DNA of 64,000 bases from Gnetum montanum (GCA_015680685.1 MNCI01003248.1:62001-126000); one strand, 5' to 3'; shown: positions 22,148-53,879, counted from the stretch's first letter. The notes: generated from the letters alone by a model not told the origin. Numbers and translations: made by a program.

Positions 22148-22427
22148 ATGGCCCCTCTTTGTTGATGTTTGGAGGATTGACTTGAGAGGCACTGACAAAG
22201 AATACAAAACACCACTGCATCTTATAACATTATAATGCATAAAGGCTATATGAGAAGTAGGCTATCCAAGTCATTAATGTTGCTAGTTTAAGGTTGCGGT
22301 GGGCCATGGTACCAGTTTAAGGCCATGGTAGTCCTTGTTGCCAGTTTAAGGTCGTAGCAGATCATGTTGCTAGTTTAAGGTTGTAGTGGACCATTAAAAG
22401 TAGGTTTTCTTGTTGATGATCCATTAG

Positions 22428-26179: not shown

Positions 26180-26839
26180 CTATTTAAAAGTGAATAAATA
26201 ATGTTAATATGCCATAAAACATATGCAAATCTAATGCAATCAAGGCCATCCAATGGCATTAATGAGATGAGGTCAATTTGAAAAAGTGAAATAGAGGCGA
26301 ACAAGGGTTACAGAAAGGTCAAATAAGGGGAAATATAAGGAATAAGGCTACAGATGATTAATAAAGGCCACAGTTTTGCTAGTTTTAGGCCTTAGTGGGT
26401 TGTGATGCTAGTTTATAGTCTTAGTGGACTATGATGCTAGTTTAAGGCCTTAGCGGGCCATGGTCATATGGTGTCAAACGATGGTCAGGGAAGGTCAAAC
26501 CCCACTATTTGATACCATTTAAAGGCTATAAAAGGGTAAATAGAGCTATAATAAGATAACCAAAGAACATATAGAGCTATATAGAGGCCATAGAAGGTCA
26601 ACCATGTTCATAAGGTAATATAAGTCTAAAAAACAAGCCAAAACATTACATAATAAGTCAAAAATCAAGCAAAATAGGCCATATATGATAAAATTTGGTT
26701 AATATAGGCCAAAATGGCTAGGTTTTTGCTAGCTTTAGGCATTAGTGGGCCATGTTTGGAGGCTATAGGACTATTAACTAAGTTCAGGCATTAATCTGGG
26801 CTATTTTTGGATCGTCCAAACCCAAAAATCAAGTTTTTT

Positions 26840-29337
26840 GAGGCTTCCATGTTAGGCTCAATGTGGAAATAGGGACCGTTAGTATGGAGACTAAGGAAAA
26901 TATGTTTTAGGATGTTTAGAAATCCAAAATTGAGGTTCTGAGACCTTCCCAATGTATTGTAAGGTAAAATCCTTCAAAATTGGACTCGATGGAGGTCTAT
27001 AAAGGCCAAAAAGCAAGTTCTAAGGTCTTCCCCCTTTATTTTAACACTAGCTAGTGTGGGGAACCAACATCCAAATAAAAATGAGGTCAATCATGGTCAA
27101 ATAGGTGGCTGGCATTTAAATTTGGAACTTACGCACCTCTCGGCTTCGTTTTGAGGCAATTTGAGGCCATTTTGAGGGTCAATAGGTGTTAAAATAACTT
27201 CCTCCCTTTAACATTGGGTACAGTATCCCCAACGTGGAAAAATAGGAGGACACTTATTTGATGGATTCAGAGTGATTTTATGGCACTTTCACAAAGTTTC
27301 TAGGCCCCTAAGGTCGCAAACTTCAATTCTGCAAGTTTCTGGCTAATTTTGGGCATGTTTTAAGGTTTTTAAAGGGTATTGAAGGTCTTCCTCTTTGTTT
27401 CCACACTAGGGGAGTTACTATAGCATGGAAGAATGGGGAGGAATGGATTTTAGAGATTGAAATGAGGTCAAACAAGTGAGATCTTGAGGTTGTGAGGTCC
27501 TAGGCTTCTCTGGCAAAGATCTTTTGTTTTCGAGAGTGTTACCTTGATTCCAAAAGTGGAAAAGTAACTTCCCCCCTTTTCTCCACATTGGGGAGGTTAC
27601 TTGAGCATGGAAGAAGTAAGAATCATAGATCTAGATCAATTTGGACAACAATTGATCATGCATATTACCTCTCGGGGTTACTAGGATCAAGGGCTATGGA
27701 TATATGTCATAATTTGATAGTTTTGGACATCCTTAAGTGTTTGGATTTTTCCCTTTCTTCCACGTTGAGTCTTTTATGGTTAGCATGGAAAATAAGGGAG
27801 AGTGGATTTTTGACCCATTTTTTCCTCAATCGACTTTGCATGTTAGCCCCTAGGGCTACTAGGGTCAAGGGCTGAAGTTTGGTCTTTAGTTTTGACAATT
27901 TTGGGCATTCCCAGGTGGTTTTTTTGGCTTTCTGCCTCTTCCATGTTGAGGCTTCCATGCTCAACATGGAAAATAAAGGGGAGAGGATTTTTAATCCATT
28001 TTTCCCTTAATCGACTTTGCCTGTCAGCCCTTAGGGCTACCAGGGTCAAGGACAAAGGTTTGGTCTCAAGTTTTGGCAATTTTGGGCATTCCCAAGTGGT
28101 TTATTTTTCTTTTTCCCTTTCTTCCACATTGAGGCTTCCATGGTCAGCATGGAAAACAAGGGGGAGTGGATTTTTGACCCATTTTTCCATCAATCAACTT
28201 TGCATGTTAGCCCCTAGGGCTACTAAGGATAAGGACTTGGGTTTGGTCTCAAGTTTTGGCATTCCCAAGTTGTTTTTTGGATTTCCAACTTTCTTCCACA
28301 TTGAGGCTTCCGTGCTTAGCATGGAAAATAAGGGGAACTGGAGTTTTGACCCATTTCGCCCTCAATTGACTTTGCACTACTGGGGTTGAGGATAAAGGTT
28401 TGGTCTCATGTTTTGATAATTTTGGGCATTCCCATTTGGTTTTTTGGCTTTCCTCTTTCTTCCACACTAAGGCTTCCATGCTCAACATGGAAAAAAAGGG
28501 GGAGTGGATTTTTGACCCATTTTGCCCTCAATCGACTTTGCATGTAAGCCCCAGGGGCTATCGTGGTTGAGGACTCAGGTTTGGTCTCCAGTTTTGATAA
28601 TTTTGGAGATTCCCAAGTAGTTTTTTGGCTGCCCCACTTTTTTCCATGTTGAGGCTTCCATGCTTAACATGGAAAATAAGGGGTAGTGGATGTTTGATCC
28701 ATTTTGCCCTGAATTGACTTTGCATGTTATCCCTTGGGGCTATTGAGGTTGAGGACTTGGGTATGGAGTCAAAATTGGTCATTTTAGAGGTTTTTAAGAA
28801 TTTCTTGGATTTCACCCCCTTTTTCCATGCTAGGGCTTCCACACTTAGCGTGAAAAATTAGGGGAAAAGCTTTTTGACACTTTATGACTACTTTTGGTTA
28901 TGCATGCAGGCTTCTAAGGTTGCTAGTAATGACTGTTGCTATTGATGTTAAAATTTCATTGTTTCATGGTTGACAAGACATTTTTTGGACTTTCCTCCCT
29001 TTTTACACATTGGGGCTTCCAAGCTTAGCATGGAAAATTGGGAGGAAAGCTTTTTGATCACTTTTGGCCACTATCGAGCATGCATGCAGGCTTCTTAGAT
29101 TGCCAGTGATGATGGCTACTACTTGATGTCACAGTTTCATTGTTTCAAGGTTGAAAAGGAATTTTTTGGACTTCCACCCATTTGCCCATGTTGTGGCTTC
29201 CAAGCCCAGCATGGAAAATTAGGAGGGAAAGCTTTTTGGTCACTTTTGACCACTTTTTGAATATGCATGCAAGCCCCTAGGTTGCCAGTGTTGCCTACTA
29301 TCATTTGACTCCAAAATTTGACTATCTTGAGGATCAT
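26840..29337. repeat. ~180-bp tandem array in the B spacer, each unit with a TTCCAYGYTRRG-N9-CYYARCRTGGAA inverted repeat (left part)
   Basis: Well-conserved units ~27700-29337, e.g. perfect stem TTCCATGTTGAG/CTCAACATGGAA at 27939-27971; array resumes after C at 49467. Confidence 0.85.
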
Positions 29338-30998
29338 TGTAGTAGCTGAAAATATCGAAGGCTATAATGAGACACGAAGAGGTCCATGGTCGTGCAATCT
29401 TAACCCTACTCTTATGTGAGAGCTTATTGGAAAGCGAAAGTGGGATTCCTAGGATGGTCTTATCGATCGAACTAGGACTTATGGGTGTTACAATGAAATG
29501 AGTGTTAAATGGAATGTAGTGTTTTGCAATGTTTGCGGTGTCCATGGGTGTGAGCATAGCAGAGATTTCAAACGCAAGAACAAGGATGTAAATGTGCAAA
29601 TACATGCGTGAATAGTGCAAAGTGAGTAAAATGCTAAAAAATTAAGTAAAAATGCAAAAAATGCATGGAATGTGAGTAAGAGAGAAAGACATTGTTCCAA
29701 ACTAGGTAGCATAGTTAATTGCAAAGGAAAGTTTAGGAGGTACACAATGCACAACAGATGTAGTAGGCGAGCATAGTCACAGTCTTAGGGTATTTAGCTA
29801 TGAAGAACTAACATCCACCATGAAGTCTGAGCCTACAAGGTTGGCTACTGCGGTGTCCTTCAAGTTGTGGTGGTGTATAGTGTGTTAGGCAATGTACAAT
29901 GGTGTTGCAACAGTATGCAATGGTGTTCAATGGTGTCCCAAATTGTGTCAAGTTGCTAAGGATGCTTAGGTGTAAGAGTGTCTATGGTCAAAATGCCAAC
30001 TACTGAATGAAAATGTCAACCCCTAAAATGTGAAGTGCAGAGGTATTTATAGCATTAGGGTTAGCATGAATCGTGGATCAAGCACCACGTGGTAGAGGGG
30101 TAGTTAGGACTACACTTATCCTAACTATGCTCCATTGAGGCAACATGGTGTTCTGTTGATGTGCTTCAATGGACCTTGTGAGACTGCCAGACTATAACCA
30201 TGTTGCCAAGACTACATGTGTGAATGTTAAACAAACTAAAAGTGCCTAGAAATAGTGCAAATTTTGAGACTATGCTTTGGGGTTGTGCTACCCACTTTCA
30301 GGAGTGGGTTGGGTGTAGGTAAAACTTTGGGGTGAATGGGGGGTGCAAAAGAAGTGCAAATTGCTAATCTTGCTTGCCAAAGAAATGTTGGAGTTGAGAT
30401 GTAGGCCAGTGCTGAGTTCTGGAAGCTTCTAAAGGTAATTATGGTAGACTACGCTAACTACGCTCTAGAGCGTACCCTAAGAGGTTAGGAAAATCTTGCC
30501 TAGAAAATGATGCTCTATGCAGGCTATGTTAGCTATGCTCTAGAGCATAGTATCAGAGGTGTGAGTGTAGCCCTGACACTTGGAAAAAAAACTAGCAAAG
30601 ATGATGTGCCAATGCAGACTACGCTAACTATGCTATAGAGCATAGTAGGGAGCATAGTGCTAGAAGTTAGAAAATCTACCAAACTATTTTTTCTATTCCA
30701 TACATGCTCAACAACCTCTAACTTTACACTTAGGTAAATTTGCAAAACTAGTCATTCCAAGGCTAACTATGCTGACTACGCTCTAGAGCGTAGTCTTGGC
30801 AGGGTGAGCGTAGTTAGGACACAGGAAAAGTTGCAGTTGTTGATACTTAGAAGAATTTTGCAAATATGGACTAATAGTGTCAACTACATTGACTAAACTT
30901 TAGAGCATAGTCCTAAAACTTAGACAAAATTTGCCAAGTTTTAACACTTAGCCAAATTTGCAGTTGAGACTTGAGAGTCCAAATTTGGTGGTATTTTA
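29338..30998 (-). repeat. 3' LTR of element C
   Basis: TGTAGTAGCTGAAAA...GTGGTATTTTA; minus-strand TATAAATA at 30044-30051. Confidence 0.9.
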
Positions 30999-32527: not shown

Positions 32528-33275
32528 CCTAGTTTAAGGTCTTGGTAGATCGCATGCTATGCTAGGTTAGGATCCTAGTAGATCATGGGCCTAGTCTAAG
32601 GTCTTGGTAGATCATGATGTGCTAGTTTATAATCCTAGCAGACTGTTGTATGTTAGTTTAACATTGTAATGGACAGTAGATGTTGTGCTAGTTTAACGTC
32701 ATGATGCAAGTATGAGCTGTGCCAGTTTAAGCATCATGGTAGACAAATGCTATGGGTTATAGTTTTAGCATCATGGCCCAAGGATGATTTGTGCCAGTTT
32801 ATAGTCATAAAGGACTACTACTATGCTAGTTTAGCATCATATCAGATGTGCTGTGCCAGTTTATAGTCGTAGTAGACTATGCTATGGATGCTAGTTTTAG
32901 TGTCATGGCCCAAGGATGATCTGTGCCAGTTTATAGTCGTAGTAGAATATGCTATGGATGCTAGTTTTAGTGTCATGGCCCAAGGATGATCTGTGCCAGT
33001 TTATAGTCATAGTGTACTCTTGTTGTGCCATCATAGTAGACATGCTGTGCTAGTTTGTAGTCATAGCAGACTATGCTATGGGTGCTAGTTTTAGCATCAT
33101 GGCCTAAGGATGATGTATGCTAGTTTATAGTCATAACGGACTCTTGCTATGCCAGTTTAGCATCATAGTGGATATGCTGTGCTAGTTTATAGTCATAGTG
33201 GACTATGTTGTGGGTGCTAGTTTTAGCGTTATGGCCTAAGGATGATTTGTGCTAGTTTATAGTCATAGTAGACTC
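32528..33275. repeat. C 3'UTR tandem array of the ~25-35 bp GCYAGTTT... unit with higher-order repeats
   Basis: More than 20 copies of TGCYAGTTT(T)A...TC(A/G)T(A/G)G; near-exact ~70-bp duplication at ~32851-32990. Confidence 0.85.
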
Positions 33276-33313
33276 TTGTTTACCTTGTTTCATCATTGAT
33301 GAAGCGTTGCATA

Positions 33314-36300
33314 CTAGGCATAGTACGAATTTAGGTATGAGTGGTTTATTGGATTGGAAAATTCATTACCATCATGGTCAACAAGCTTAAATGCTTCGTT
33401 GCCAAGCCTTGACGACTAAGAAAAATCCTTCCTAGTTGGCTGAGAATTTATTTGCGGGTTTGTGAATGGCCTTGAGGAACAAGTCCTTCTCCTTGATTTG
33501 GCATTGATGCTAACTGTGATGGTGCTTTTGCTGGTATTACTTGATTTGACCAAGCATCTACATGCACTCCTACTCTATCGAGTCGAGGTCGATGGTTCTC
33601 AACCCATCATTTTGAGCCTCGTCTATGAAGCTTGAGAGGATTACACAGAGTAATGAAACTTGCAATTGAATAAGTAAGATGGATTCAAACCTTAAACTAG
33701 ATTGTATGGCATCTTACCTGATGTAGTTCTTTGTGTCATGCGGTAGGCCTAGAGTTTGTAGATTAGCTACTCATGCCATTGTCATTTGTTGCTGTGAAGC
33801 ATTTTCTTTAAAATATTGATGATGATTTTGTTTGTGGCCTCTACTTGGCCATTCATCTATGGGTAGTAAGGTGACAAAAAGGAATGTTTGATTTCAAGGT
33901 GCTCGCAAAAGGCATTGGTTTTAGCATTGCTAAATTGTGGCTCATTGTTTATGAATATGGTCATAGGTAAATCAAAATGGGACATTATGTTATCGAGTAT
34001 GAATTTGTAGATTTTTTGTGATGTGGTCCTCCTAAGGGGAATAGCCTTGAACCACTTCATAAAGTACTTAGTGGTAGTTATGATGAAACTATGCCTTGCA
34101 CAGAACATAGGAATTATTGGTCCTATGATGTCCAACCCCCAATGTTGGAATGACCACATGATTTATGTTGTATGTAGTTCAGTGGGAGGAGGGTGCATTA
34201 AGTTACCATGTTGTTGATAGGTGTCGCATGTCTTGATCTTGGAGATGCAATCACGCTCCATGTAAGGACAATAGTAGCCTAAGCGTTTGATCTTTGCTGC
34301 CATTACCCTGGGTGCTATGTTTCCTTTGTAGAGTCCCTTGTGGACTTGTTCCATGATCGCTTATGCTTCGCTGTGACTAATGTAGGTTAATAGTATGCCA
34401 TCATATTAGTGGTGACATAGTGTGCTATTACCCACGATGATGTACTACCTCGATCACTTTTGCACTACATCCTTTTGGACAATGGTTAGATGTTGCAGAG
34501 GTTCACCCTGTAGAAGGTATGACTTATTATTGTTGTACCACTCTACTGCATGGGTCATGCTTACTGTAGCTATGGATGCAATGTCGGTTGCTTGTGTGAT
34601 AGGCACAATGCAATTTGCCATCGGTGGACAATGCATGAAACATTTTAGGTGTAATGCTTAAGGCTAATGTAGCTAATGCATTGGTACTAGAGTTTTCATT
34701 ACAAAGGATATGATAGACATTAATGGTTGCAAATTTCTTGAGTAGGTGCTTTGCCAAGTCATAATGAGGCTTCAAGTGTTGGGCTTTGTAAGCATAAACC
34801 TGTGTGACTTGGTTGATGACTAGTTGTGAGTCTCCTTGGATCGCTAGGTTTTGTATTTTTAGGTCACAAGTTGCTAAGATACCTCTTAGGAGACCCTCAT
34901 ACTTTGCCATGTTGTTAGTGCATGGAAATGCAAAATGATATACGAAGGATCAGATCTCCCTAGAGGGGAGCATGATTACGGTAGTGGCACTATCCCCTTG
35001 AGAGGTTGAAGTGCCATCAAAGTGTAAAAGTGCCTTGAAGTTGTTAGGCATTAGGCTTATGCCACTGACATGCTCATCCAGAAATTTTAGATCTATCATT
35101 ACTTGGTCATTAATTGGGGAAGTTGTAAGTTATGTCGTTATTGTCTAACCTTTGGTTGATGCTTGCACAATGTAATGTAGATTAAACTCTACAGTTATTA
35201 CTTTCCAACATGTAATGTGATTGCTCTTGTAGATATTCATTATAATAGCTTGGAGTACATTGCTCTTGCAGATGATATTTACTTGGCCATAGAAAAGGTA
35301 ATGCCTCCACTTGTTAAGTGTAAAGACTAAGTTGAGGCAAGTCTTTTCCACATCAGTGTACTTTGCTTTGTAGGCTACTAATGCATGGCTGAGGTAGTAC
35401 ACGAGGACCTTGGTACCATCGTCTCACTCTTGGTAAAGCAAAGAAGTGATGGACGCGTTAGAGGTAGCAAGGTAGATGTAGAATGGTTTATCTCATTGTG
35501 GAGGGTAGAACATTGGAAGTTGAGCTAGTCCTTATTTAAGGTTGTTGAATGTCGTTTGGCACTAAGCTGTCCCCTCAAAGTGAACTCCCTTTTTGAGCAA
35601 GTGTCTCATTGGCTGCAACTTGTTAATCAACCGTGCGATAAACTATCATATGAATTATAATTTTCCTTATAACCCTTGGAGCTCCTTAAGGTTGGTCGGT
35701 GGTGCTAAGTTGATAATGGCCTTAACCTTATCAGGGTCTATGTGTATGCCTACTTTGGATACTACGAAACCTAGCATGTAGCCTATTTTAACGTTGAAGA
35801 TACATTTCTTAGGATTTAGCCTAAGTTCATACTTTAGGTAGCATTTGAGAACAAGGTCTAAGTCATTGCATGATTGTGTAATGCATTGGATTTAACCGCT
35901 ATATCATCAATGTAATCATTGAGTAGACCTAACAAGTAATCACTAAAGATGTACATCATAGCTTGTTGATAAGTTGTTCCTACATTCTTGATTCCAAAAG
36001 GCATCATGGTGTAGCAAAACGTGCCCCAAGGGATCATGAAGGTAGTACTGAGCTAGTGCTCGAGGTTGATCTGAATCTGGTTGTGCCTCGAAAACCCATC
36101 CATGAAGGACAACAAGGCATGACCAACTGTAGTATTGACCAGTTGATCAATACTAGGCAATGGGAAATCATCTTTGATGGTCTTCTTGTTGAGGTCTCAG
36201 AAGTCTATGAAAATGCATATACTTCTATTTTTCTTAGGGACAACAATGATGTTGGAGATCCTGTTTGCGTAGTCAATGGCCTAGATGAAACTAGCTTTTG

Positions 36301-36829
36301 TAGACCTTGGTGATTTCATTGCAAACTGCTAATGCCACCTTAGGCCTAATCTTGTGGGATTTCTGCTTGATTGGTTTCATGCTGGGATCAAGGATTATGT
36401 TGTGTTGCACTATGCGAAGATCTAGGCCTAGTCTTTGTAAGACCATGTGAATGCCTTGATGTTTTCATTAAGTGTTTTTGTGATGTTTTGGACATGTTAA
36501 GGCCCTAACAAAGAACTAAGTTTCAATGTTTTTACCTTGCCACTAGATGTTTCTATGGGAACCTCAATGAGGGGATCCTTGGTGACATCACCTACCTCTA
36601 GATCTAGAGTCTTAACTAGATGGTTTGGCCAATTTAGCGATGCCTCTATGGATGTTATGTATTCATTGTAGGCTACAGGCTTAAGGTATAGGCATTGAGA
36701 ATCGATGCATTGTGTAAGATTGCCTTGTGGCCTAATGAGGACTAGAGGTGAATGAAGATGCTTGTACATAGTCATGTTGTGAATCTTGCAATAATCCTAC
36801 AAAAATAACCAAAAAATTTCGAGCCACAC
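33314..36829 (-). pseudogene. Element C pol: RT, RNase H, aRH, integrase (degenerate)
   Basis: NDYIDDIA; MYYLSHALVAYKAKYTDVEKTCL; HFDG...NNMAKYEGLLRG...GDSQLVINQV (aRH); WGLDIIGPI integrase. Confidence 0.92.
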
Positions 36830-37622
36830 CTATCTTAATGAGGGCAATATGCATAGTTAAAGAAAAAAATGCAATGAAAATTTTGCCTACATCTATAAAT
36901 GTGATTGCAAAAGCAAAGGATGTGTGGGCTAGTTTTAGGCCTCGATAAGCCATGGGATTGCCAGTTTAAGGTCTTAGTGGACTGTTGGATGTGAGTTTAA
37001 TGTCATAGCTAATGGTTAGATGAAATGCCAATTTAACATCATAGTGGATGAATGAAATTCTAGTTTAACGTCATGGAAGATGGGTAAATTGCCAATTTAA
37101 CATTGTGGTGAATGATTAGGTCACTAGTTTAATATCATAGCAGTTGATTAGTTTAACACTGTGGTAGATAGATGAAATGCCAGTTTAATGTCATGGAAAA
37201 TGGATGAATCGCCAGTTTAACGTCTTGGCGAATGGTTAGATCACCAGTTTAACGTTGTAGCGGATGGTTAGATGCTAATTTAATGTTGTGGCATATGGTA
37301 ATATGTACTAAATGCATTATTGAGGCACGACTAGGGATGTTGGAAAAGCAAAATTGGCTTGGGCGCCAACTGGGTAACATGAAAAATTTAAAACTTTGCT
37401 AAGTCCAAAGACTACTAGAAAAATTAATTTTTTTTAAACTCTGGTGACTATGCTCACATTTGGCTACACTTGGTAATGTTGAGCGTAGTAATGGGTAGGT
37501 AAAACTTTAAGTGATCCCCAGGGATATATAAGTGCATTTTACCCTTAGAAAATTTTTCATTGTCAAAAGGTAAAAATGAACTTTGCAGAGCATAACACAA
37601 TTGCCAAAGCATAGTTGCCAAC

Positions 37623-40600
37623 ATGTCACACCGACATGGATATCAGCACCTTGGCCTAGCCAACATGGAGGAGGGAGAGCGAGTCTTGGAGTGCCTACCA
37701 TGGGCATGCGTGGAGGAGAGGAGAGCATCATTGATTGCTAGGTATGCTTGACTATGCTCACCTTCCTTTTTGTGTTTTCTACATTTGGGTGTTGGAGCTT
37801 GGGTTTTTGTAGGCAATGCCCTTCCTTGGTAGGGGTCACTGTTGCTATGGCCATTGTGGCTATCACAGTAGGGGAAAAGAGCATGTGCATGAAAATTAAG
37901 GGTTGTTGTAGTGGAGATCTTGTTACTGTGCATGAGGTTTTGAGGGTAATGTGTGACTATTTTTCCTACAATTTTTTTGTTAGGTTTTTTGCACAGAAGG
38001 CAAGGAATCTGGGTTTTGGGTAATGGCTGCCAAGAGTTACCGCTCGGGGGGTTGAGGTTGTGGTAGAGGGTTTTTTCCATTTTCATTTTTTCTCTTTTTT
38101 TTTTCATTTTAAGTGCAGTGGGCAAGGGTAAAGCAAGGATTGGTAGCGGTGGCTAGGGATGGTTAGATGGACACAGAGGGTTTTGACAAGGAGTTTTGCA
38201 GAAATTTTTGCTTTCTGTCATGACGCAAGTCAAGGGTTTAGGGTTTTGGCAGCAGCGTGAGGCTACCACATGCAGGACAGAGGTGTGGTAGAGGGTTTAC
38301 CCTCTGATTTTGATTCTTGAGTTATGAAAAATGCAAGTGTGATATGGTTCAGGGCCATGGGGATTATGGGGACATCATGCCCTACGATAGTAAGGGGACT
38401 ATGCAAGAGATGAAACACCTAAGGATGCATTTTTTGGATAATGTTTTTTTCTTTTTTTTGGCTAGATGAGCTAGGCAAGCAGTGTGGCATGTGGTAGCAC
38501 CGTTGGTGTGGCCATGGGGGCTACGATCATGGTTGGCACTTAGTGTGTGAGACATGACGAGAGTGGCCAGTTAATTTTTTTTCTTGAACTTTTGTTGAAG
38601 TTTTTTGGAGGCTATGCTCGTAGGGAGCGTAGCTAGTAGTTAGATTTTTTTTCTTGCAAAGTTGAGGGCTACACTCCTTGGAGAACATAGTTGGTAGTTA
38701 GAAAAGTTTTTGTGTTCCTGGACTACATTCCTAGAGGTAGCCTAGAGTTAGAATTTTTTTTGGGACTCTCTGGACTACGTTGCCCAGAGTTAGAAAAAAT
38801 TTTGCTTAATGTAAACAATGCTAAAAACTGTGATAATGTCAATCTTGCAAATCGAAACAATGCCAAACTGCTAAAGCATGCAAATTGAGACAATGCAAGG
38901 CATGCACACATCTGGAACAAAATTCTAATGCTATGCTAAGATGTTGTACCCCAATGAGTAACAAGTGGGTTAAATGTTTATGTTAACGATCCATACTGGC
39001 AAGCTCCAGGGGGGTCCTAGGATAAATATTTTTTAAGTTATGCTATGTCATGGTAATTTTTGCTAAATTTTGTTAAGTGTAAATTAATGTGTTTTTGCCA
39101 AAATGTATCTAATGTGTACTAATGCTATGTTTCTTTGTGTGATTGTAGGGGGTTGCTAAAGTCAATCTTGGTGGTTGTGGAGCTGGTTGGCATCCTTTGT
39201 TGCATGAGAAAGCCTGTGCCCAACACACTTGCCTTAGATATAAAGTTGGGTCATTAGGTGATATGGTTTTAGCTAGGGGCATTTGAGTTCTTGGCATTCC
39301 TACTACAACAGTTTAGTGTGATCATGTGGTCACACTTAGTGGTAGAGGCTGCGATTGCCATCATTGATACATTAATACCTGAGGCTAATTAAGACATATT
39401 GAGGTTTATGTCCAATAAGCCCATGAACATTGATGATAGAGCAGGTGGTCTAAGGTAAGGCCCTAGGGACTCTTGTCCCTTATCCAGGATCTAGAAGATG
39501 CTAGAGTTTTCTTGTTATTATAGGAGCAACACCCTTTTCGTTGCTCTACATGTGCATACTATGTTCTAGAACCCACTTGGAACTGTATACTATGTTGAAG
39601 GGTAAGTGCTCTTATGATTTGGTGTTGTATTGCTTGCTACTGGCCATGCTAAATTTGTTAACTGGTAAGTGCTCATGCCTAATGCTAGATTTAAAGTTAA
39701 TGATCAAGGGCTCCACGATGATCCACACTGCCTTAGAGGTATTCTGCTCTAATACAAACTTTTGGGAGGCAGTGCTCAAGCAGGTGGGAGAAGACTTAAA
39801 GAAATAATCCACTTGGTATTTGAAGGCATTCAAGCGATGTAAGATCCTCACTTGGGTTGATGAGGGGGGTAGGGAGAGGGGTGGGGGGGTGGGGAGCACT
39901 AGTGGCTTAACCTTTAGGAGTCAATTGCATTTCCACCACCACCGTGCACACCATTTGTTCTACGCAAGCATTTTTTGTTTAGCTTTTAAGCTTGCTCACA
40001 TGCACTAGTTGATTTGCCCTTGCAGAATGCTAACATTAAATTTGCCTATGTTACAGTTGTAGTGGCTTCAAGAGAGGTGACGATGGTCACTACTAGCCGT
40101 AGTGAGGCCACCCTCATAATGAAGTACGGTGATGTAGAGGGGACATAGCATTGGTTGTGTCATTGGGCCTTAGAGGCGTTAACCAGTCGGCTTACACATG
40201 CTAGTTTGATGGACCTTTTCTTGGCCCTTAGCCCAAGCATTCTGGTAGTTGAGATGGTTACCATTATAGATTCTTTCAACAATGATGCCCATCACTTTGT
40301 CATCTGCATGCACAGGGTGAGGGTAGTTCTGGACCTTAGCAATACCTTCTTTGCTGAGCTCTTTGGCCTCCCCTCTAAGGGCCTGTTGGTCATTGACAAG
40401 GCTAATAGGGAGGTGTACTACAAAGGAGAGATCCAGGAGTGGCTAGGAACCACCTAATCGCACAAAGGCATCATGGTTAAAGATGTGCATGTGCTTGATA
40501 TTTGGAAGATCTACCCTTTTTTTCGTGTCCATGTATTTTCAAAGCTGCTCTCCTAAGAAAAAATCCTTGGAGTGGAGCAAGCATGGGCGATGAGGGAGGT

Positions 40601-42754
40601 ATTGGAGGAGGGCACAAGGTTTAACTGGGCCTCCTTTCTCACTGCTAGATTGCAAGCTGAGATCACCAGACTTCACTACAACCTCCAGGCAAGGTCTCAC
40701 TTGCACTTTGCATTCTTCGCAGTGTATCTGTGAAGGTTCTTAGAGTTCTTGGTGGTTTGAGATAGTGGGCATTGGGTAGTATAGGATTGCGAATAGCTAT
40801 CCAAGCCTTGGGTCAAACACTTGTCCACCACCACTCACCGTAGGACCTCCTAGAAGGGATCGATAAGTTGTACTTAGTTATGACCAAAGCCCATTTGGGG
40901 TAGTCACGGTCACACTACTCCAATGATAATGCTGGTAAGTGTCCCCCAAACATTATTGGGGATGCAAATAAGGCTAACTGTTACATCGCAAAAATGGTGG
41001 GCCCCTTCAAGATGAAGATCAAGAGGCCATGCCTAGCAGAGAAGGCTTCCCCTACGTTGGACAGGTAGGCGTTAAGAAGATCCACCTCAAGATACCCACC
41101 TTGCATGCAAATATTATAGGTTAGTTCATGTGTAGATGTATTTTTTTTTAAAATTTTCTATGTTCATGATTTTTTATGTTTTTTCTTGTTATGTTACACT
41201 AATGTTACCATGCTATTTTTGTGAGTTAGGTGAGAGGGTTGCTGAAGTAGCGGTAGAGACAACCACTCCTCAAATTGAGCAGGAGGTGCCTAGGGAGGAC
41301 CTACATGAGGCCACGAATGCCTTCTAGCAGTTTGATGCATAGGGGCTACTCCACCTTGATGAGGGTGATTTTGCCAACCTTTTTGATGGTGTGCAGCTAG
41401 GAGATCCCCCTACTCTCACACTTGAGGGCTTACTTGGTAAGCGCTTTGAGTTGCCATCTATTTTGATTTTTTGCTTTTGCATCTTTGGATATTTAGTTTT
41501 TGCGAAATATTACATCATGTTGGGTTATAACCTTGGATGTTTTTGCCAACGATTCACCACCCGCACTTGCCCATTGCATGAAGCCATGGGTTAAGAGACC
41601 AGATAAATTCACCTTCATGGAAGCCATAGTTGAGGACATGGTGGACCACATATAGTAGTTGGATCTTGAGCTTAGTATGCATGTTATTTTGTTTTCATTG
41701 CTTTATTGATTTTATGCTTAGTTTGTGGCTAATGTTGATTTTTTGTTGCATGCCAATAGGTTCTAAGCTCCACTAGGATCTGAACTGGGTGGTCAAAGTG
41801 GATGCTATCCCCAAGTACCCTTCTGAAGTTGAGCAAGTACCTTGTTGCATGTATGAGGTAGCTAGCAAATGCATGCTTTCCAGTGTAAAAAAGTTATGGA
41901 GTTGTAGGCACTCGAATGAGCACTTGTGGAAATGCATGAGCGATATTCATGAGATAGTGGTGAGTTAGAACGAGAAGATCAGGGACCTTTAGTCCCAATA
42001 TGATTCCTTGGTGTCTTGAGTAGGGGGAGATAGTACCTGGTGGACCATAGAGATCAACTATGTCAGGTATTGGTCAGCAATCTGGGGTAAGATTGAGGCC
42101 ACCCGGGAGGTCATCGAGTAGAGGCTATAGATGGACCTGCTTGCCTAGAAGGGCCAGGAGTGGAAGAGCTTTAGTGCTAAGGTGTGTAAGTGGGGGCACA
42201 CATAGAAGGACCACAAGCACCACTATAAGCATGAGTGAGATGCATACATGTAGCAACTCAAAGAGGATTCCATGAAAGCCCACCGCCTTGAGTTGTTCGT
42301 TGAGGTGATTAGCGGGAGTTGGGCCTTTGAGATATTTGCTCATCACACAATGGTTAGTGGTTCTCCTAAGTGGGAGATCGCCATGCCGTTAGGGGAGACC
42401 TTGTTTGCCACATTTTTGATGTAGCCACTTACATGGACCACCGTGGACAAAGACAAGACCATTGTAGGTGTTGACTTTGGCCAAGAATACTAGATGCAGC
42501 TGTTAGAGCCCAAGATCCTCCCATGCTTAGATGAGGGTCTTGATAGAATACCTTCAAACATGGTCGATGTGGGACCCTCTTAGGTTAGTTTGTTTGTGTC
42601 TTTATGCCTTTTTCTATTAGTTGTATATCATACACTTGCTTATGATTTTCTATTTTGATGTTGCTATTGTTGATAGACACTAGAAAATGCTATAGTCCCT
42701 AGTGGCACAGTAGAGGAAGAGGAGCCTTCACCCCCACCTAGCACCACTAGTTAA
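37623..42754 (+). pseudogene. Multi-exon antisense accessory gene of element C (about 7 exons)
   Basis: TATATAA 37525; ATG 37623; GT-AG introns 37742-39148, 41120-41229, 41675-41759, 42584-42676; further acceptor at 40056 and donor at 41437; U-rich introns with CTAA(T/C) branch motifs; exon 2 homologous to the B gene. Confidence 0.7.
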
Positions 42755-43559
42755 GTAGATCTTGATGTAGCCCTGTCATTGGAGATTTTTGAATTTTTGT
42801 GTATTTTGTTGTATGATATAGAGGATGCGATGGGTTATACATTTTTCATGAAATGGTGTAGAAATTTTGTCATGCAGAGTGTATGATGAGTAGACTTTTG
42901 CATTTATTTGCTATGTGTTGTGCGAATGATGTGATAAATAATGCAATTGCTAGTTCTAGGCCATTTCAGGCTACATGTGTGGATAATGCTTCGAGAGTTT
43001 TAGGCTGTTTTAAGCCTCACTGATAAGGGAAATTTGATTGTCAGTTTTAGGCCATGGTAGGCTATGCATTAGTTTAAAGCCTTTTTAGGCCATGTGACAC
43101 AAGAGAGATTACTAATTTTAGGCCATGGCAGGCTGTATAGTAGTTTAAGGCCATTTTAGGCCATAGATTGCAAGTTTAAGGCCATGGTGAGTCGTGCTTT
43201 ACTAGTTTAAGGCTGTAGTGGGCCATGCTTGGTAGTTCTGGGCCATTCCGAGCCATGCAAAAAAGGAAGGAAAGGTTGCCATTTTTAGGCCTTAGCAGGC
43301 AATGACATTTTTGAATCTTTGAACCTAATGATTTTTATGTGTTTTGCTATTTTTTATATGTTAACTAACTACCAAAAGGTAATTAACTGGAAGTGTAAAC
43401 CTAGTGAAAATGCACAAGTAGAAAAAATGAACATATGTAAAATAAATAATGCAAAGAATGCTAACCAAGTGGATGTAAAATGCAATCAAAATGCAAAGAA
43501 GAAAAGCATGCAGAAATGGGGTAGGCATTGACCTAGTGCCTATTGGACCAAGGAAATGC

Positions 43560-46500
43560 CTTAGTTGAGTAGTTGTTTCTTAATTTGGTGTGGTTTAGGA
43601 GGCATGTAAAGCCTGGAGGGTACGATATGGTACTCACCCTAGTCTTTGTTAGCTATGTTGAAGGGAAATTCTGCCCACAAAGCATATTTCGAAGGGTCAG
43701 GGGCTCCTATTGGCTTTTCAAGTTGGTCTACTTCACATTTTTTGCCTTTGTCTTTTGTAGGAGGCATGTCATCAGGGAACTCCATCTCTGATTCCTGTTC
43801 AGCATCGATGTTGCTAATGGTTAGAGGGGAAGCATTGTCACCATGTATGATAATCTCTCCACCTTTGTTTCTTGATGGATTGGGGAGGAGAGGGCTCGCA
43901 GTTGGGCTAACCAGACCCTACCTAAGATCAAGTTGAAACCTAGCATCTCCTCAATCACTATGAATTCAACAGTGGTGGGGAATTTCTTCCCTACCATGAA
44001 AGCTATCATGATAGTTCCCCTTATAACAACATTCAACTCATTGAAGGACTTTAGGCATGTTATTTTTGTTGGTTGGATCTGATCAACAAGAATGAGCTTA
44101 TCAACAACCGTGTATGAGATGACATTGGCTGTCATCAACATGCACCCTACAGATTTTGCATTCTTCCATGTGGATGGTGATGAACATTAGCACAGTAATA
44201 ACTTGATCCTTCTTAGGGTCCATCTTGATTGCTTCATTGCAAAATGCCAAGGGTGTTGAACTTGATTCTTGTAAAGGGGGAGACAACATCATAGCATGAA
44301 TGGACCATTCATCCATTGGGATGTCCTTTGTGATAGGAATGGAGGTCAACATGCATACTAACGCTTCACAATGGACAAAGGAGGTCATTACCAAGTCATG
44401 TAGGCTTAACATTATGTTTTTCTATTTTAAAGCTTGCTTAACTTGGGCCAATTCATCAAGGAAGTCTTTGCCATTGTCTGTTGCTTTATTGTTGGTGGTC
44501 CTCATCTCCTCCATGTGGCCCAAGAGATGAATCTCTTGTGAAGGGGATTTAGTCCTTGCTTATTTTGTTTGCTTTGGAGCTTTAGTGCGTCATAGTGAGT
44601 TGCTTATTGTTGGAGCCTTTGTGCTCCAGTGTTGGTGGCTAGTTGTTGTAGCCTCTTCAGTTGGTTGGACCATTGGTACAGAGGACAAGGGGACAAGCTT
44701 AGGTGGGCCTAGTGCCCTTTACCCCTGGTGTTTCCTAAGCATTAAATTAACAAGATGCTTGTCAAGCCTTTTGGTTTGCCATCTTGGTTGTCTGTTGGTG
44801 TCACTTACAGGACAAGGTCTTGGGTGAGTAGGGGGTCGATGCATTGCCCACCATCAAACTTCCAATAGGTAGGGAGTTCACACATTGTGGCATCCTTATG
44901 ACAAAGGGTATTTAGGTTATTGTAGTTGCAACATGTTGTAGGGCCCTAATCACAAAGGGTATTATGGGTGCCCAAGGTGGTGCTCTGATGACAAAATGGA
45001 TCCTTGAATTAGTTGCTGTTAAGGAGGGCCCAATGTTACCAGAGGGCACACAAATCATGAATGGGTGCTGTGCTGGTTCTGTATCATCATTAATGTTGAT
45101 GGCATTGATGATGTACCCTAGATTGCTTGTGTTGAATGGGTGCTGATAAACCGCCATTGATTGGTTTTGGGGGTGCACTAGGTTGGTAGCATCAAGAACC
45201 AACTCATCCTTGGTAATTATGCATTGGATGTTGTCTTGCAAAGCCATGCAAAAGTCTATGTCATGACCTTGCAATTGGTGATACTAGCAAAATTGGTCTA
45301 ATTTGAAATGCTTAGGGACCAGGGGCTTGTTAGGCATTGCAGCTAAAGGGTTTCTGAGGAGCTCGTAATATTGATCATGCCACTTGTGAGCATCATTGGA
45401 TATTTGCTTATACTGGATGCATCCAACATGAAGCAATTGGTCTAATAGCTCTAACCACTTGATGGGCAATAGTGTATACTTCGAGTGATCATTGTGCTTG
45501 AAGTTAGGCCTTGTGGTAGTTGGTACCATGGCCACCGATGATGCAGACTGGTTATTTATCATTGGGCTAGGGCCAGTTTCCTTGTTGTTGTTGGCTAGAG
45601 CCTTGAGTGGCTTAGTCATTAATTTGGCATTGCCCAGCTTAACCTTGTTGGCCACAGTTGCAATAGTTGTGGTTGCTTACTTGCCTTTGTTCTTGTCTTT
45701 TGCCTTTTTGCATGCAAGTTTTTGTAGGCCACATAGACTGAATCCTTGTTGGCCTTTGCTACATCCTGAATGCTCTTAGTTTGAGCAAATGCTTGACTCA
45801 CGGATTGCGGGGCAAGGTAGCATAGTTTCAACTTAATGAAGTTGTTTACTGCACCTTTGTATATGGGTAGTAGGTGTGTCTCTGTGATAGGCTCGCAAAT
45901 CTTGTTGAGTGACGTGCTCCATTGTTGGATGAATTTTTGCATGGGCTCTAAGTGGCCCTACTTTACTTGCATTAGTTGGTCTACGATCATCTCAAGCTTC
46001 AAGTTGTACTTGAAGCAAGTGATGAATTGGATAAGCAATCCCTCTACAGAAGTGATGGAGGCCCTAGGGAGCACATGGCACTAATCTAGTGCCTTGTCGA
46101 TCAGGGACATGATGAACACGTGGATGATGGCATTTGGCCATGCCTATAGTAGGAGGCATTCTAATCGAAAGGTTACTAGATGGGCATTATGGTTCCCTTC
46201 ACCATTGTATTTGGTGAACTATGGGAGTGGGACCCCAGTGGACAATGCCAGTGGTGGAACTACAAGATTGATTGGATCATCTTGGTAGAAGTCCATCACA
46301 TGGATGGTTTCTAAGGAGGTGACCTTAAGTCACTTGACTTCTCTAGTAAGGATTTGGATCAGTTGGAATTCTTGATCCAGGCCAAGTGTGGTTGTAGTGG
46401 CGTGCTGTGAGGGTTGTGTTACCCATTACGGTTATTGGGTGGCCCATGACTCAACTCTAGGTTGTGTAACCACGTGCGATGCTTGTTGCATGGGCTGCAT

Positions 46501-47787: not shown

Positions 47788-49466
47788 TATAGTGACTAAA
47801 AATGTTAGAGGCTAGAATGGGACATCGAGAGGTCTACGGTTGCATAATCTTGACCTTGCTCCTGTGTGAGGGCTTGCTGGAAAGTGGAAGCAGGGTGCCT
47901 AGGATGGTCTTATTGATTGAACTAGGACTTACGGGTGTTACGATGAAGCGAGTGTTAAAGGGGACACAATGTTTTATGATGTCCGTCGTGTCTTTGGGTG
48001 TGAGTAGAGATTTTGAATGTAAGAACAAGGATGTAAATTGGCAAATACATGCTTGAATAGTGCAAAGTATGAGTAAAATGCTAAAAACTTAAGAAAAAAT
48101 GCATGGAATGTGAGTAAGAGAGAAAGGCACCACCCCAAATGGGGGAGCATAGTTAATTGTAAAGGAAAGTTTAGGAGGTATGCGGTGTACAACAGACACA
48201 ATAGTTGAGCATAGTCATAGTCTTAGGGTGTTTGGCCATGAAGAACTAATGTCCACCATGAAGTCTGAGCCTATCGAGTTAACTGTCGTGGTGTCCTACA
48301 AGCTATGGTGGTATACAGTGTGCCAGGTAGTGTACAATAGTGTCGCAGTGGTGTGCAATGGTGTTCCATGGTGGCCCAAAATTTGTCAAGTTGCTAAGGC
48401 TGCTCATGTGTAAGAGTGTCTATGCCCAAAATGCTAATTGCTAAATGAAAAGGCCAGCCCCTAAAACGTGAAGCACAAGGGTATTTATAGGGTTAGGGTT
48501 AGCATGAATCACGGATCAAGTGCCATGTGGTGGAGGGATAGCTGGGACTACGCTCACCCCAACTACGTTCCCACTAAAGCAACATGGTGTTCTCCTGGTG
48601 TGCTCCAATGGACCCTGTGCGATTGCCAGATTGTGACTATGCTGCCAAGACTACATGTGTGAATGTCAAATAGATCACAAAGTGCCTAAAAACAATGAAA
48701 ATAGTGTAATTTGGAGATTATGCTTTGGGGCTACGTTGCCCACTCTCTCTAGTGGGGTTAAATGTAAGTACAATTTTGGGGCAAATGAAGGGTGCAAAAG
48801 AAGTGCAAATTACTGATCTTGCTTGTCGAAGAAATGTTGGAGATGAGATGCAAGTTGGTGCTAAGTTCTAGAAGCTTTTGAAGGTAGTTTCAGTAGACTA
48901 TGCCGACTATGCTCTAGAGGGTAGCCTAAGGAGTTAGGCAAATCTTGCCAGAAAATGATGCTTTGTGCAGGCTATGCTAGCTATGCTCTAGAGCATAGTC
49001 CTAGAGGTGTGAGCATAGACTTAACACTTGGAAAAGAAACTGGTGAAGATGACGTGTCAATGGAGACTATGCTAACTATGCTGTAGAGCATAGTAGGGAG
49101 CATAGTGCTATAAGTTAGAAAATCTACGAAACTATTTTTTCAATCCCATACATGCTTAGTAGTCTCTAACCTAACACTTAGGAAAATTTGAAAAATTGGT
49201 TGTTCCAAGGCTGACTACGCTGACTACACTTTAGAGCATAGTCCTAGTAGGGTGAGTGTAGTTAGGACACTTAGGAAAATTTGCAGTTGCTATTGACACT
49301 TAAATTTTTTTTGCAAATATGGACTATTAGTATCAACTATGTTGACTATGCTCCCCACTATTGGGACTATGCTCCAGAGTTTCAACACTTAGATAAAATT
49401 TGCCAAGTTTTAACACTTAGCCAAATTTGCAATTGAGACCTGGAGCCCAAATTTAGTGGTGTTTTA
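47788..49466 (-). repeat. 5' LTR of element C
   Basis: TATAGTGACTAAAAA...GTGGTGTTTTA; aligns with 29338-30998; minus-strand TATA at 48482-48489. Confidence 0.9.
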
Positions 49467-50430
49467 GTCATAAGCTATTTTTTGGACTTCTCCACCTTTT
49501 TCCATGTTGGGGCTTCCATGCTCAGTGTGAAAACTTAGGGGGGAAAGCTTTTTGGTCATTTTTGATCAATTTGGCCATGCATGAGTGCTTGCAGGATTGC
49601 TAGCATTGGTCATTAGTGCCTGAGGTCAAGATCTAGTTGTGTTGGGGGTTATGAGGGGGGTTTTTAGGCTTCCCACTTTTTTTCCATGCTAGGGATGGAA
49701 GGCTCAGTGTGGAAGAGGTTCCTTGAATCTAGAAAGGTAGATCTAGGCCAGATTTGCAGTTGATTGACCAAGCATGTTGACCTTTGAGGTTGCCCATGTA
49801 ATGGTCAATGTTGGATGTTAATATTTGATAGTTTGGAGGCTTCTAAGTGGCTCATGAAACTTTCCCTCTTTCTTCCACGCTAGGAATGGTGGCCTCAGCA
49901 TGGATGAGAGGGAGATAATAGATTTGTGCCATTTTTAATGCATTTTGGGGCTTCTTAAAGCTTTGGAGGGTTTTGATAGGGTCTAGGGATCATCATGCAT
50001 CAAGAAATGATCATTATGTCACCAATTTAAGTCATTCTTGGCTTCCCCCCCTATAGAGCCTTCCCTAGCATGGAAAACACTAAATCCTAGGTTTTGACTA
50101 GTTTTGGTTGGGTTTGGTAAGGTTCCAAGGCTACCAGAGATGCTTGGAGGAGTTTTGGGTCATGTGGGATCCACTTTGGGGTTAAATTTGTGTTAGATGA
50201 GTGCTTGGGAGGTACGAGTGAGTGTTACCCCCCTTCTTCCACATTGGGCACTATTGGCCCAATGTGGAAATCCATTGTTCTTAGCCATTCTCATGTTTTA
50301 TCCAAATTTGAAAACCTAGGGTTGAAAAAGGTAAGTTTGGGTTACTAAAAATAGAAATATATTGTAATGTTAATAAATTTAAAAATGATAAACATGTTTC
50401 CACGTTGGGCATGGTATTCTCAGTGTGGAT
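49467..50430. repeat. Continuation of the B ~180-bp palindrome-bearing array, right of insertion C
   Basis: Palindromic sites at ~49500, ~49683, ~49873, ~50237, ~50398. Confidence 0.75.
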
Positions 50431-50839: not shown

Positions 50840-53179
50840 ATGGTGCCAAAATAGAGAGAAGGAAAGAGCAAGAATCCCACAATCTAGAGGATGGATGAGT
50901 GCTCCAGGAAGTTTTTTGAGGTTCTAAGGTCTATCTCAATTTGGGTCCCATCTGTCATTGCTCCAAGGTAGGCAATTCTACCTAATTTTTCCTTTGTTTG
51001 CATGGTTTCATTCTAGTTTTTTGTCTTCCAAGTGTTAGGGCCGTTTTTTCAAATCTATTCTGTTTGGGAGATTATGTCAAAATTCTGACAAAATCTCACC
51101 TCCTATTTTGGTTACTTCCATGTAGATCTATGATTATTTTATTGCTTTAGCTTCTTGTAGATTTGATTTTGAAAACAAGCCTTGTTGTTTTGTGTTTTTT
51201 TTTCCAAAATCTTGGGGTATGTCTTTTGTTTAGATCTAGGCCTTAGGATTTGTTGAAATTAAATTTCAACAAAATCCTACCCCATTATTTTGATGTGAAT
51301 TTAAATAGGTTGTAAGGGTTTTGGCTATTTGAACTGTTTTAATGGCTATATGAAATTTGGGCTTTGGGATTTTTCAAGTTTTGGTACAAAAAAGCAAGCC
51401 AAGTTGTGTATTTTTTTCTCAATAAAATAGTTGCATATTTATGAAATCCAAGCTTATGGCTTTGTAGCTCTTTATTTAAGCTTCATGATGGTTTTTGTCT
51501 CATTTAATTTGGCTTTGAAATGAGGGAGCTATGGCTATTTTCCTAAAGTTGTGCAGTTAGGTTATTTGTGGTGCTATTGTGATTCAACGTAGATTTATGA
51601 AATTTGCACAAAAAAATGACAAACGTTTCTGCTATTTTCTAGGCATGGGTGTGTAGAATTTGGCTTCAACTTTCCAATGGAGGTGGAATCACTTTGATTG
51701 GGCTTAAAACAAATTTTTCATGAATTTTTGCTAAGGTTATGGTGCATTACCCAACATAGAAGTGGTTGATTTCTTGCTTTTTCTAGGAGAGTAAAAGCTT
51801 TTTCTATTTTAAGTAAGTTTTTGTTATGGTTTCATGGATTTTTCTAAGTTTATCATGATTTTTCTAAATTTGTGCATAGTTTAGATGTTTTTTTTCCCAA
51901 ATTTATGCTTGCTTTGTATAATGTTAGATACTTTTTCTAAACTTATGCTTGCTTTTTTCCAAATTTATGCATAATTTAGGCGCTTTTTCTAAAGTTATGC
52001 ATAATTTAGACTAAGACATAGTTTTGGCCATAATGTTTTTGGTTATAAAGGCTATAAAATATGGTATGAATGATTTTATAGAATTTCTCAAGCTAATTTA
52101 GATAAACACCTAAGAGCTTTTATAGAAGCTAATCTCACCTCTAACTTAGGAAGTTTTCTCTAAAGTTGGAAAGAAATACCAATTAGTCATAATGCAATAT
52201 TGTGATGAAATTACTTAGGAAAATTTAGATAAACACCTTAGAGCTTTTTGTAGAGGCTAATTTCACCTCCAACTAGATGTTTTATGTAAATTTGTAAAGA
52301 AATTCCAATTGGTTATAATGCAAGGTTGTGATAAAATTACTTAGGAAAATTCAGATAAACACCTTAGAGCTTTTTATAGAGGCTAATTTCACCTTTGACT
52401 AGATGTTTTGTCTAAATTTGCTAAGTAATTCTAATAGGCCATCATGCTTTTGGGTGGAATTTCTTAAGCATATTAGATAAAAACCTTAAAGCTTTTTACA
52501 AAGGCTAATTTCACCTCTGACTAGCATGTTTTCCAGACTTGTCTAATTAGTCACAATGTTTTTGCTTTGGAAGGTTGTAATAGTACATTTTTATGGAATT
52601 TCTTAAGCTTATTAGATAAACATCTAAGAGCTTCTTCAAGAAGCTAATTGCATCTTTGACTTAGGAATTTTTCTAAACTTGTTAAGAAATTCTAATTGGT
52701 CTCAATGTTTTTGCTTTGTTTTGTGCATGGTCTTCTTGGGGCCTGTTCTCATTATAGTGGAGTTGGTAGGAATTTTATGCTACATTGGTCATCCCAAGAC
52801 CAATACTCCACCACATGACATACCTCTTGGGAAGCTTTTGTTGTGGTTTTGGCCTAGGGCAAGGGACTTCCTTGCCTACCTCCTCAAGAACTTTAGTGTG
52901 ATGCTGTGGTCACACTTGTCCATAGATGTAGCCGGGGTTGTTGTGGAGAATGGCCTTCCACATTTACCCTTGGAAGTTATGGAGCTAGAATATCCCTAGG
53001 TTTTATATATTCTATGATTTAGTCTATGTTTTGAGTCATGATTTTGGCTATTGGTTACTAATTGGCTATATGTCATTGCGTCTTAGGTCTTAGGAGACAT
53101 TGGCGGCCCTAGCGGTGAGGGTGGGAATGACCCACCACCTCCTCCTCTAGATGATACTCAGTAGCCTCCTTCAGTTTAG
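50840..53179 (+). pseudogene. Spliced antisense accessory gene of element B; exons 50840-50967, 52729-52999, 53087-53179
   Basis: TATAA at 50663; ATG 50840; donor AAG|GTAGGC; exon 2 VFLGPVLIIVELVGILC...FSVMLWSHL is homologous to C exon 2; acceptor decayed to TGCAT; in-frame TAGs consistent with CAG>TAG decay. Confidence 0.65.
52095..52700. repeat. ~125-bp tandem repeat, about five copies, inside intron 1 of the B antisense gene
   Basis: TAGATAAACACCTTAGAGCTTTT...GCTAATTTCACCT at ~52098, ~52225, ~52351, ~52473, ~52612. Confidence 0.8.
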
Positions 53180-53879
53180 CTTGTTGGATATTTGTTTTTG
53201 TTTTTATGTTGATGGCTATGGTTAGCCAAAACTATGTTATGAATGGTTATTCTTTGGCATCACTGCTACACATTTTGGTTATGGCTATATGTTATGGACA
53301 TTTAATTTTGAATTTGAATACTTGGTTTCATTTTTGGCTATGTGCATCTATGTAGTAAATGTTGTAAATGACTCTATTGATGTTTTTTGGTTGCAAAACC
53401 AAATGGCTAATTAATGTAATAGTAGGCCAAGTATGAGAGATATGGCAATAAAAGGAATGTTTGTTAGTTTTAGGCCATCACGGGCACATGTTATATTGCG
53501 TAATTATGGCTATATTACTAGTTTAGCGTCTTAGCAGACAAGAATGCCAGTTTAAGGTCATAGCAGACCATAGTGTCATTTTTAGGCCTCAGTAGGCCAG
53601 AGTTCTAGTTTATGTCTTAGCAGATAGAAATGTTAGTTTAAGGTCATAGTAGATCCTAACACCAGTTAAAAGTCATAGCGAACCGTAACACTAGTTTAAT
53701 GTCATAATAGACTGTGTCTAAAAGAGGTGCTTCTTTAATGTTTAAAATACAAAGAACAATGCAAATATTTTTGTGGCTACATGCATTAGGCGATGTGCAT
53801 GATAAAGATATCATAAATTGCAAAAGAAAAAATTAGGCTATTTGGCTATCATGGCATCTGATCATATAGATATAGGAAG

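Follow-up and report, generated by a model that had tools for sequence, protein, structure and literature searches.

Can a plant retrotransposon carry a protein-coding gene on the strand opposite to its own genes, within the gap that separates its protease from its reverse transcriptase, and can such a gene contain introns? The question is raised by a stretch of 64,000 nucleotides from Gnetum montanum (GCA_015680685.1 MNCI01003248.1:62001-126000; hereafter the window, meaning the whole stretch that was analysed), in which two decayed Ogre-like Ty3/gypsy elements, called B and C, lie one within the other on the minus strand. An initial annotation had proposed an intron-containing gene on the plus strand of both, in the spacer between protease (PR) and reverse transcriptase (RT). 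One part of this proposal stands, namely a selected coding island of about 80 codons, while the five-exon model built around it does not. To our knowledge, plant Tat elements have been known to bear antisense extra genes for 25 years, with no function yet assigned to them, and long terminal repeat (LTR) retrotransposons of plants have only two well-documented introns, of which the Ogre intron is one. The coordinates of all features are collected in Table 1.

When the spacer of C was compared with the rest of the window by tblastx, the sole significant match inside the spacers of the two elements was a plus-frame match of 237 nt between 39144-39380 in C and 52724-52960 in B, with a score of 84 bits and 35 of 79 residues identical. 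Chance similarity was ruled out by an exhaustive scan of 43,461 plus-frame diagonals of 79 residues, in which the runner-up reached 22 identities in comparison with the 35 of the island. At the nucleotide level the identity is 55% within the island and random (25%-29%) in the 150 nt on each side, and both B and C have a T-rich tract ahead of it. The frame of B stops at 52997-52999, and the aligned frame of C, 39147-39389, comprises 81 codons ahead of its TAA. Both peptides that had been quoted for the locus are present, from 39150 in C and from 52730 in B.

The two decayed copies, B and C, are the sequence basis for all that is said on selection. In the plus frame, the mismatches between them at codon positions 1, 2 and 3 number 34, 19 and 54, respectively (chi-square p = 1.4e-7). 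By Nei-Gojobori proportions of nonsynonymous (pN) and synonymous (pS) differences, the island has a pN of 0.352 and a pS of 0.756; the corresponding values between B and C are 0.327 and 0.691 in PR and 0.336 and 0.923 in one gag block. In every one of its five other frames the island has a lower pS, with a pN/pS of at least 0.62; over 59 codons, the best minus frame meets 3 stops in B and likewise in C, and the plus frame of B is fully open. Taken together, the pN/pS values, the codon-position pattern and the open frame of B demonstrate that the antisense conservation is real at the protein level. The plus frame was under purifying selection during the divergence of the B and C families, and this selection was as strong as that on PR and gag of the same pair, which upholds the earlier statement that protein-level conservation implies past selection.

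We consider it fairly probable that the island is the remnant, in two old dead copies, of an antisense protein gene located in the PR-RT gap of an Ogre-related lineage. Transcription would start from a promoter of its own inside the spacer, antisense to the element, and the island would be an internal exon with a T-rich 3' splice site at its entrance, which reads TGTAG|G in C and, damaged, TGCATG|G in B. The frame of the C family would have extended at least into 39951-40775. Introns on the antisense strand would go unrecognised in the sense genomic RNA and so would be copied at each retrotransposition, a step whose logic appears sound. Since selection acted across the divergence of the families, the element must have drawn a benefit from the product or from its RNA; the product would aid propagation or self-regulation, as has been proposed for other antisense extra open reading frames (ORFs) of the Tat lineage. 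The gene might work by way of a protein, such as a binding module of phosphatase-like kind, or by way of double-stranded RNA as well.

Against this explanation stand several results on the gene model, on RNA and on the nature of the product. Exon 2 had been described as starting in identical register in both elements, and this is not the case: at 52727-52728, B has AT, not AG, so that the acceptor reads TGTAG|G in C vs TGCATG|G in B and an ATG in B faces an AGG in C. The ATG of B coincides with the proposed acceptor, a position that suits a small stand-alone ORF just as well: the site could be either the damaged acceptor of a dead copy, in view of the shared T-rich tract upstream, or the codon at which a 90-codon ORF truly starts. 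The claim of a shared exon 1 fails as well, because the two candidates have only the residues S-[LV]-I-A-x-R in common and give no tblastx match at E<=1. In the 2 kb upstream, mini-exons that start with ATG, end with AG|GT and leave phase 2 number 2 in C and 1 in B, with 8-9 AGGT sites in each, and one exon 1 candidate per element is therefore the chance expectation. As for the TATA box or shared promoter, none is visible upstream of the candidate exon 1 of B.

Further downstream, the proposed exon 2 of C (39149-41119) contains about 25 in-frame stops, and from 39390 to 39950 its frame has stops at random density. Over 39951-40775, a stretch confined to C, the same frame then becomes unusually open, to the level of the decayed pol of C itself, with only marginal significance once the many windows are corrected for. 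This openness speaks in favour of the antisense gene, of which the stretch may have encoded an additional part. The proposed exons 3-5 have neither a counterpart in B nor a database homologue. Only the ~80 codons of the island are thus shared between the elements, and the rest of the model has no counterpart in B. All four introns proposed for C do have GT..AG borders in a plausible context. A 32-nt mini-intron at 39456-39487 was also considered and was rejected as too short for a plant intron.

Four RNA runs with one species label, three of them oligo-dT RNA-seq, were compared with the region 37300-43200 at a likeness of at least 85%; DNA runs with that label contain 56%-59% of the words of the window, and those of three related labels contain 37%-43%. 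The yield was 20-134 reads per RNA run, nearly all below 90% identity and partly aligned. Reads that join the proposed exons were absent from all four runs, a weak negative in view of the very low depth, and this copy is silent in the sampled runs. Partial reads of X11 cluster at 40058-40254, 41634-41830 and 42028-42224 with 85%-95% likeness, and they probably come from related copies. Nearly all of them have a first mate that maps to minus, the pattern of plus-strand RNA in most stranded libraries, and this counts in favour of the antisense gene. These reads carry variants at 41686-41775, continuous across the proposed acceptor 41759/41760; they therefore run through the proposed intron 41675-41759, which is weak evidence against that intron. 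Separately, reads from an unrelated transcript that is expressed match 34 nt at 42029-42062 in each of the three oligo-dT runs, and their loose ends on both sides are identical across runs, so that this match reflects a short chance or repeat likeness and not expression of the locus.

The product was sought with separate pieces or exons of the decayed copies as queries. Pfam searches of 30 pieces from both strands returned only the expected pol domains and none in the spacer (E up to 1-10). PMD (PF10536), DUF1985 and Transposase_32 had no hmmscan match at E<=1 in plus-strand pieces of at least 45 aa from 39990-42421, where the decayed copy is broken into pieces, and a PMD identity for 40149-40730 found no support from any tool. 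A phmmer search with 40149-40454 against 1.84 billion cluster representatives gave 0 matches, and so did a word-indexed protein search with the ORF of B within a length window of 58-184 aa, outside which longer relatives would fall. The ESM Atlas gave no usable match for the ORF of B and, for a piece of C, nothing beyond bacterial clusters of low recognition that were unnamed or PAS-like; PDB searches by sequence and by a B+C profile returned noise only. AlphaFold, run on the ORF of B with pieces of C, modelled two long helices (3-35 and 49-89) at a predicted local distance difference test (pLDDT) score of 59, with no HAD-like beta-alpha pattern.

By eye, the island resembles what we take to be the N-terminal half (motifs I and II) of FCP1/NIF-type HAD phosphatases, a likeness confirmed by no tool. 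In this presumed alignment, equally unconfirmed by tools, VELVGIL stands for DLDxTL and FLxxLLxxFSVxxWSH for EFLxxxxxxFExxxxTAS, and the catalytic Asp is absent. The FCP1/NIF-like HAD phosphatase family (PF03031) had no Pfam match at E<=10 and no PDB match. A 1.3-kb metagenome contig retrieved by a degenerate-motif scan shares only FSVMLWSHL with the island and was judged a chance match; scans of viral contigs found nothing.

Part of this evidence would suit a simpler gene. The conserved unit may be a stand-alone antisense ORF of about 80-90 codons, running from the ATG of B to the stop at 52997-52999 (90 codons) and over the 81 codons of C, where AGG replaces the start; it would encode a hydrophobic two-helix peptide and belong to no larger spliced gene. 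The fall of identity to the random level on both sides of the island is as this explanation predicts, B has no conserved downstream part, and the AlphaFold model shows two long helices. The model, however, is of low confidence, the T-rich tract and TGTAG|G of C resemble a plant 3' splice site, and the same frame of C is unusually open 600-1600 nt downstream. We regard the stand-alone ORF as unlikely.

Another explanation holds that the plus-strand material is functionless debris, either a captured host-gene fragment or a nested transposon, and that the 3.5 kb found only in C (39390-42940) are a secondary insertion. It would account for the lack in B of everything that C has downstream of the island, for a stop density near random over most of the C model and for the missing expression at the locus. 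Yet pN is well below pS between families that are only ~50% identical in gag and PR, which argues for selection during the replication of the elements and not just decay after one capture. Moreover, the C-only segment has no terminal inverted or long direct repeats at its bounds and no likeness to any transposase or other family, and a nested DNA transposon was rejected as its source for the want of terminal repeats. Debris is, in our judgement, quite unlikely.

Within the island, a 26-nt core (39312-39337 in C, 52892-52917 in B) is identical at 24 of 26 positions, third codon positions included. It forms a hairpin of 8-9 bp (AGUGUGAU...AUCACACU) in both elements and on both strands, with weak z-scores of -2.6 and -0.5 and no covariation possible. 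That this hairpin, as a nucleic-acid element, or a sense-strand (minus) coding exon of the element's transcript should explain the island with no antisense protein at all is very unlikely: one minus frame does have its most variable position in third place (19/34/54, as derived from the plus-frame counts; pS 0.61 vs pN 0.38), but the minus frames are broken by stops in both elements where the plus frame of B is open, and the codon-position signature remains after removal of the core (33/19/53, p = 1e-7).

The remnant of an antisense protein gene, the explanation that we prefer, has to be placed among known elements. B and C resemble Ogre, of Tat lineage IV/V, in that gag is fused to PR and set apart from the block of RT, ribonuclease H (RH) and the integrase (INT) by a non-coding gap, in the archaeal-type RNase H (aRH) found on the minus strand between RH and INT, and in their very large size (~20 kb) with tandem-repeat arrays. 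In pea and Medicago, the Ogre gap is reportedly a spliced intron, as is said to have been described by Macas and Neumann in 2007 and by Steinbauerova and others in 2008. In C the gap extends from the end of PR at ~43824 to the start of RT at ~36796, and B has the same order. An aRH between RH and INT, with gag-PR split from pol, is the Ogre-type arrangement of the Tat clade (PMC6317226, PMC4408406), and this is also what REXdb uses to recognise Tat/Ogre elements. However, the Ogre gap is a short intron with a mean of 274 bp, spliced from part of the transcripts (PMC6317226), whereas it measures ~7 kb in C and ~7.9 kb in B. Ogre also carries a sense PMD ORF 5' of gag (PMC6317226), present in 57% of Ogre elements (REXdb) and hence not obligatory for the clade; no sense ORF1/PMD gene is visible there in B or C. 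Finally, the gap in B and C differs from that of Ogre in holding a selected antisense coding island flanked by conserved arrays of a 30-nt motif.

The antisense extra ORFs of other Tat elements (Grande gene23, RIRE2, Retand and PvRetro13; PMD-coding, in lineages III and V) are located between pol and the 3' LTR (PMC7264820, PMC4408406). In agreement with the literature (PMC7264820, PMC4408406, PMC6317226), the initial annotation had assigned these to the 3' side of pol, and the Ogre ORF to the 5' side of gag. The island, and the island only, is like them in being antisense, coding, conserved between families and carried by the Tat lineage; by analogy, its role may be presumed to be regulatory. 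It differs from them in its position, between PR and RT in both elements, in the lack of any detected PMD, Transposase_28 or other domain in the spacer, and in the lack of a long uninterrupted ORF. No published description of a coding sequence, sense or antisense, inside the Ogre PR-RT gap was found. The claim of a different architecture thus keeps its first half, since antisense coding sequence in this gap is undescribed for Tat/Ogre, and loses its second, since the multi-intron gene found no confirmation. A selected antisense exon in a PR-RT gap of 7-8 kb combines two known features in a new way. A fusion of PMD and a phosphatase of PP7 type is known from MAIL3-type proteins (PMC7156037), to which the antisense gene of B and C bears a by-eye resemblance only, with neither domain confirmed by a tool; the phosphatase here may differ in being FCP1/NIF-like HAD, not PPP, and apparently inactive.

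Arrays of a ~30-nt motif (..GCCAGTTTAAGGCCATAG..) recur in one orientation in both elements, just within each end of the PR-RT spacer and once more 3' of the integrase. They are common to B and C although the proteins of the two are only ~50% identical, and they are probably a conserved cis element; by way of template switching, they may have let a cassette pass from the 3' region to the spacer. From this comes a fuller, tentative scenario, which we rate as possible and rather doubtful: an Ogre-related lineage may keep an intron-containing antisense accessory gene inside a very long gag-PR/pol intron, with a PMD-like module that comes after an inactive FCP1/NIF-like one. The cassette, bracketed by the 30-nt arrays, would have been moved from a 3' position by template switching and would be kept because the protein or the antisense RNA controls splicing, silencing or replication.

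If true, a selected antisense gene inside an Ogre-type intron would link the antisense extra genes with the Ogre intron. Retrotransposons would then be able to carry spliced genes, since introns on the antisense strand are not spliced out of the genomic RNA. A blind spot of annotation would also be exposed, as surveys of the REXdb type seek only uninterrupted ORFs outside the polyprotein and would miss such a gene. The evidence in this window reaches one selected exon in two dead copies.

Table 1. Features of the antisense island, the gene model proposed around it and the two nested elements, in coordinates of the window.
Feature	Position	Strand	Basis or remark
Island, C copy	39144-39389	+	In-frame stops at 39255 and 39270; closes at TAA 39390
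Island, B copy	52679-52999	+	Open 106-codon frame; 90 codons from ATG 52727; conserved part 52724-52960
Proposed exon 1 of C	37623-37741	+	39 codons ending AG|GT; no better than chance
C-only stretch in the frame of the island	39951-40775	+	3-4 stops per 200 codons vs ~13 expected
Proposed exons 3-5 of C	41230-42754	+	GT-AG borders, many stops
Element C, decayed Ogre-like Ty3/gypsy	29340-49466	-	Self-blastn, domain order
Element B, outer decayed Ogre-like	20207-60113	-	Self-comparison; tblastx collinear with C
C gag	44915-45957	-	Position and likeness to B; no Pfam match
C protease (PR)	43824-44186	-	Position and likeness to B; no Pfam match
C PR-RT spacer, ~7 kb	36800-43820		
C pol, all parts stop-broken	33860-36796	-	Pfam
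C RT	up to ~36796	-	
C RT_RNaseH	35148-35423	-	Pfam
C archaeal-type RNase H (aRH, RVT_3)	34530-34949	-	Pfam, E = 8.6e-13
C integrase zinc finger (Integrase_H2C2)	34166-34360	-	Pfam
C integrase core (rve)	33860-34162	-	Pfam
Motif array AGTTTAA(G/C)G(C/T)CAT, RT-side end of C spacer	36931-37304	+	B counterpart 26377-26453
Same ~30-nt motif array, PR-side end of C spacer	42945-43309	+	B counterpart 53437-53711
~30-nt motif array 3' of integrase	C 32686-33280; B 22304-22380		

The window is plant-like repeat DNA with a GC content of 30%-44%, in which self-comparison by self-blastn revealed two LTR pairs. Those of C, 29340-30998 and 47790-49466, are 79.5% identical, and the LTR pieces of B (20207-21273 and 21779-22148 vs 58482-59530 and 59754-60113) are 79%-83% identical; every coding block is broken by stops, as an LTR divergence of ~20% leads one to expect. 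C is nested within B, where it interrupts a 180-bp tandem array of B that occupies 27740-29290 and resumes at 49477-49583, right after the LTR of C. On the minus strand both elements have the order gag-PR, gap, RT-RH-aRH-INT. B is collinear with C by tblastx over INT, RH, RT, PR and gag, with amino acid identities of 58%-69% in RT, 60% in INT, 47% in PR and 45%-54% in gag; PR and gag of C, taken together, are 45%-54% identical to their B counterparts at 54192-56655. The size of the B gap given above is that after subtraction of the nested C. A search with an RT piece found, as nearest short proteins, sequences of only ~54% identity (Taxus, Victoria, ENA contigs). From the 5' LTR to gag there is only ~1 kb in C and ~1.5 kb in B, without a long ORF, and C has no plus-strand ORF of at least 80 aa 3' of INT.

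Within the spacers, a 126-bp array of B at 52095-52718 stops right at the island. A short second likeness between the elements, on the sense strand directly downstream of PR (43565-43687 vs 53897-54019; EFPFNI..GEY..V.SR.Y), probably represents a conserved tail at the C-terminus of the gag-PR frame, immediately ahead of the gap. On the minus strand of C, 37646-38152 is an open stretch of 169 codons in the sense direction, ~0.9 kb upstream of RT, in a region where several frames have few stops; the stretch has neither a Pfam match nor a counterpart in B, and its openness is probably compositional. Around B, further gypsy-type pol fragments (integrase, RNase H and RT-like) are found at 18838-19281, 19891-20175 and 60501-60890, which marks the neighbourhood as a stack of retrotransposons.

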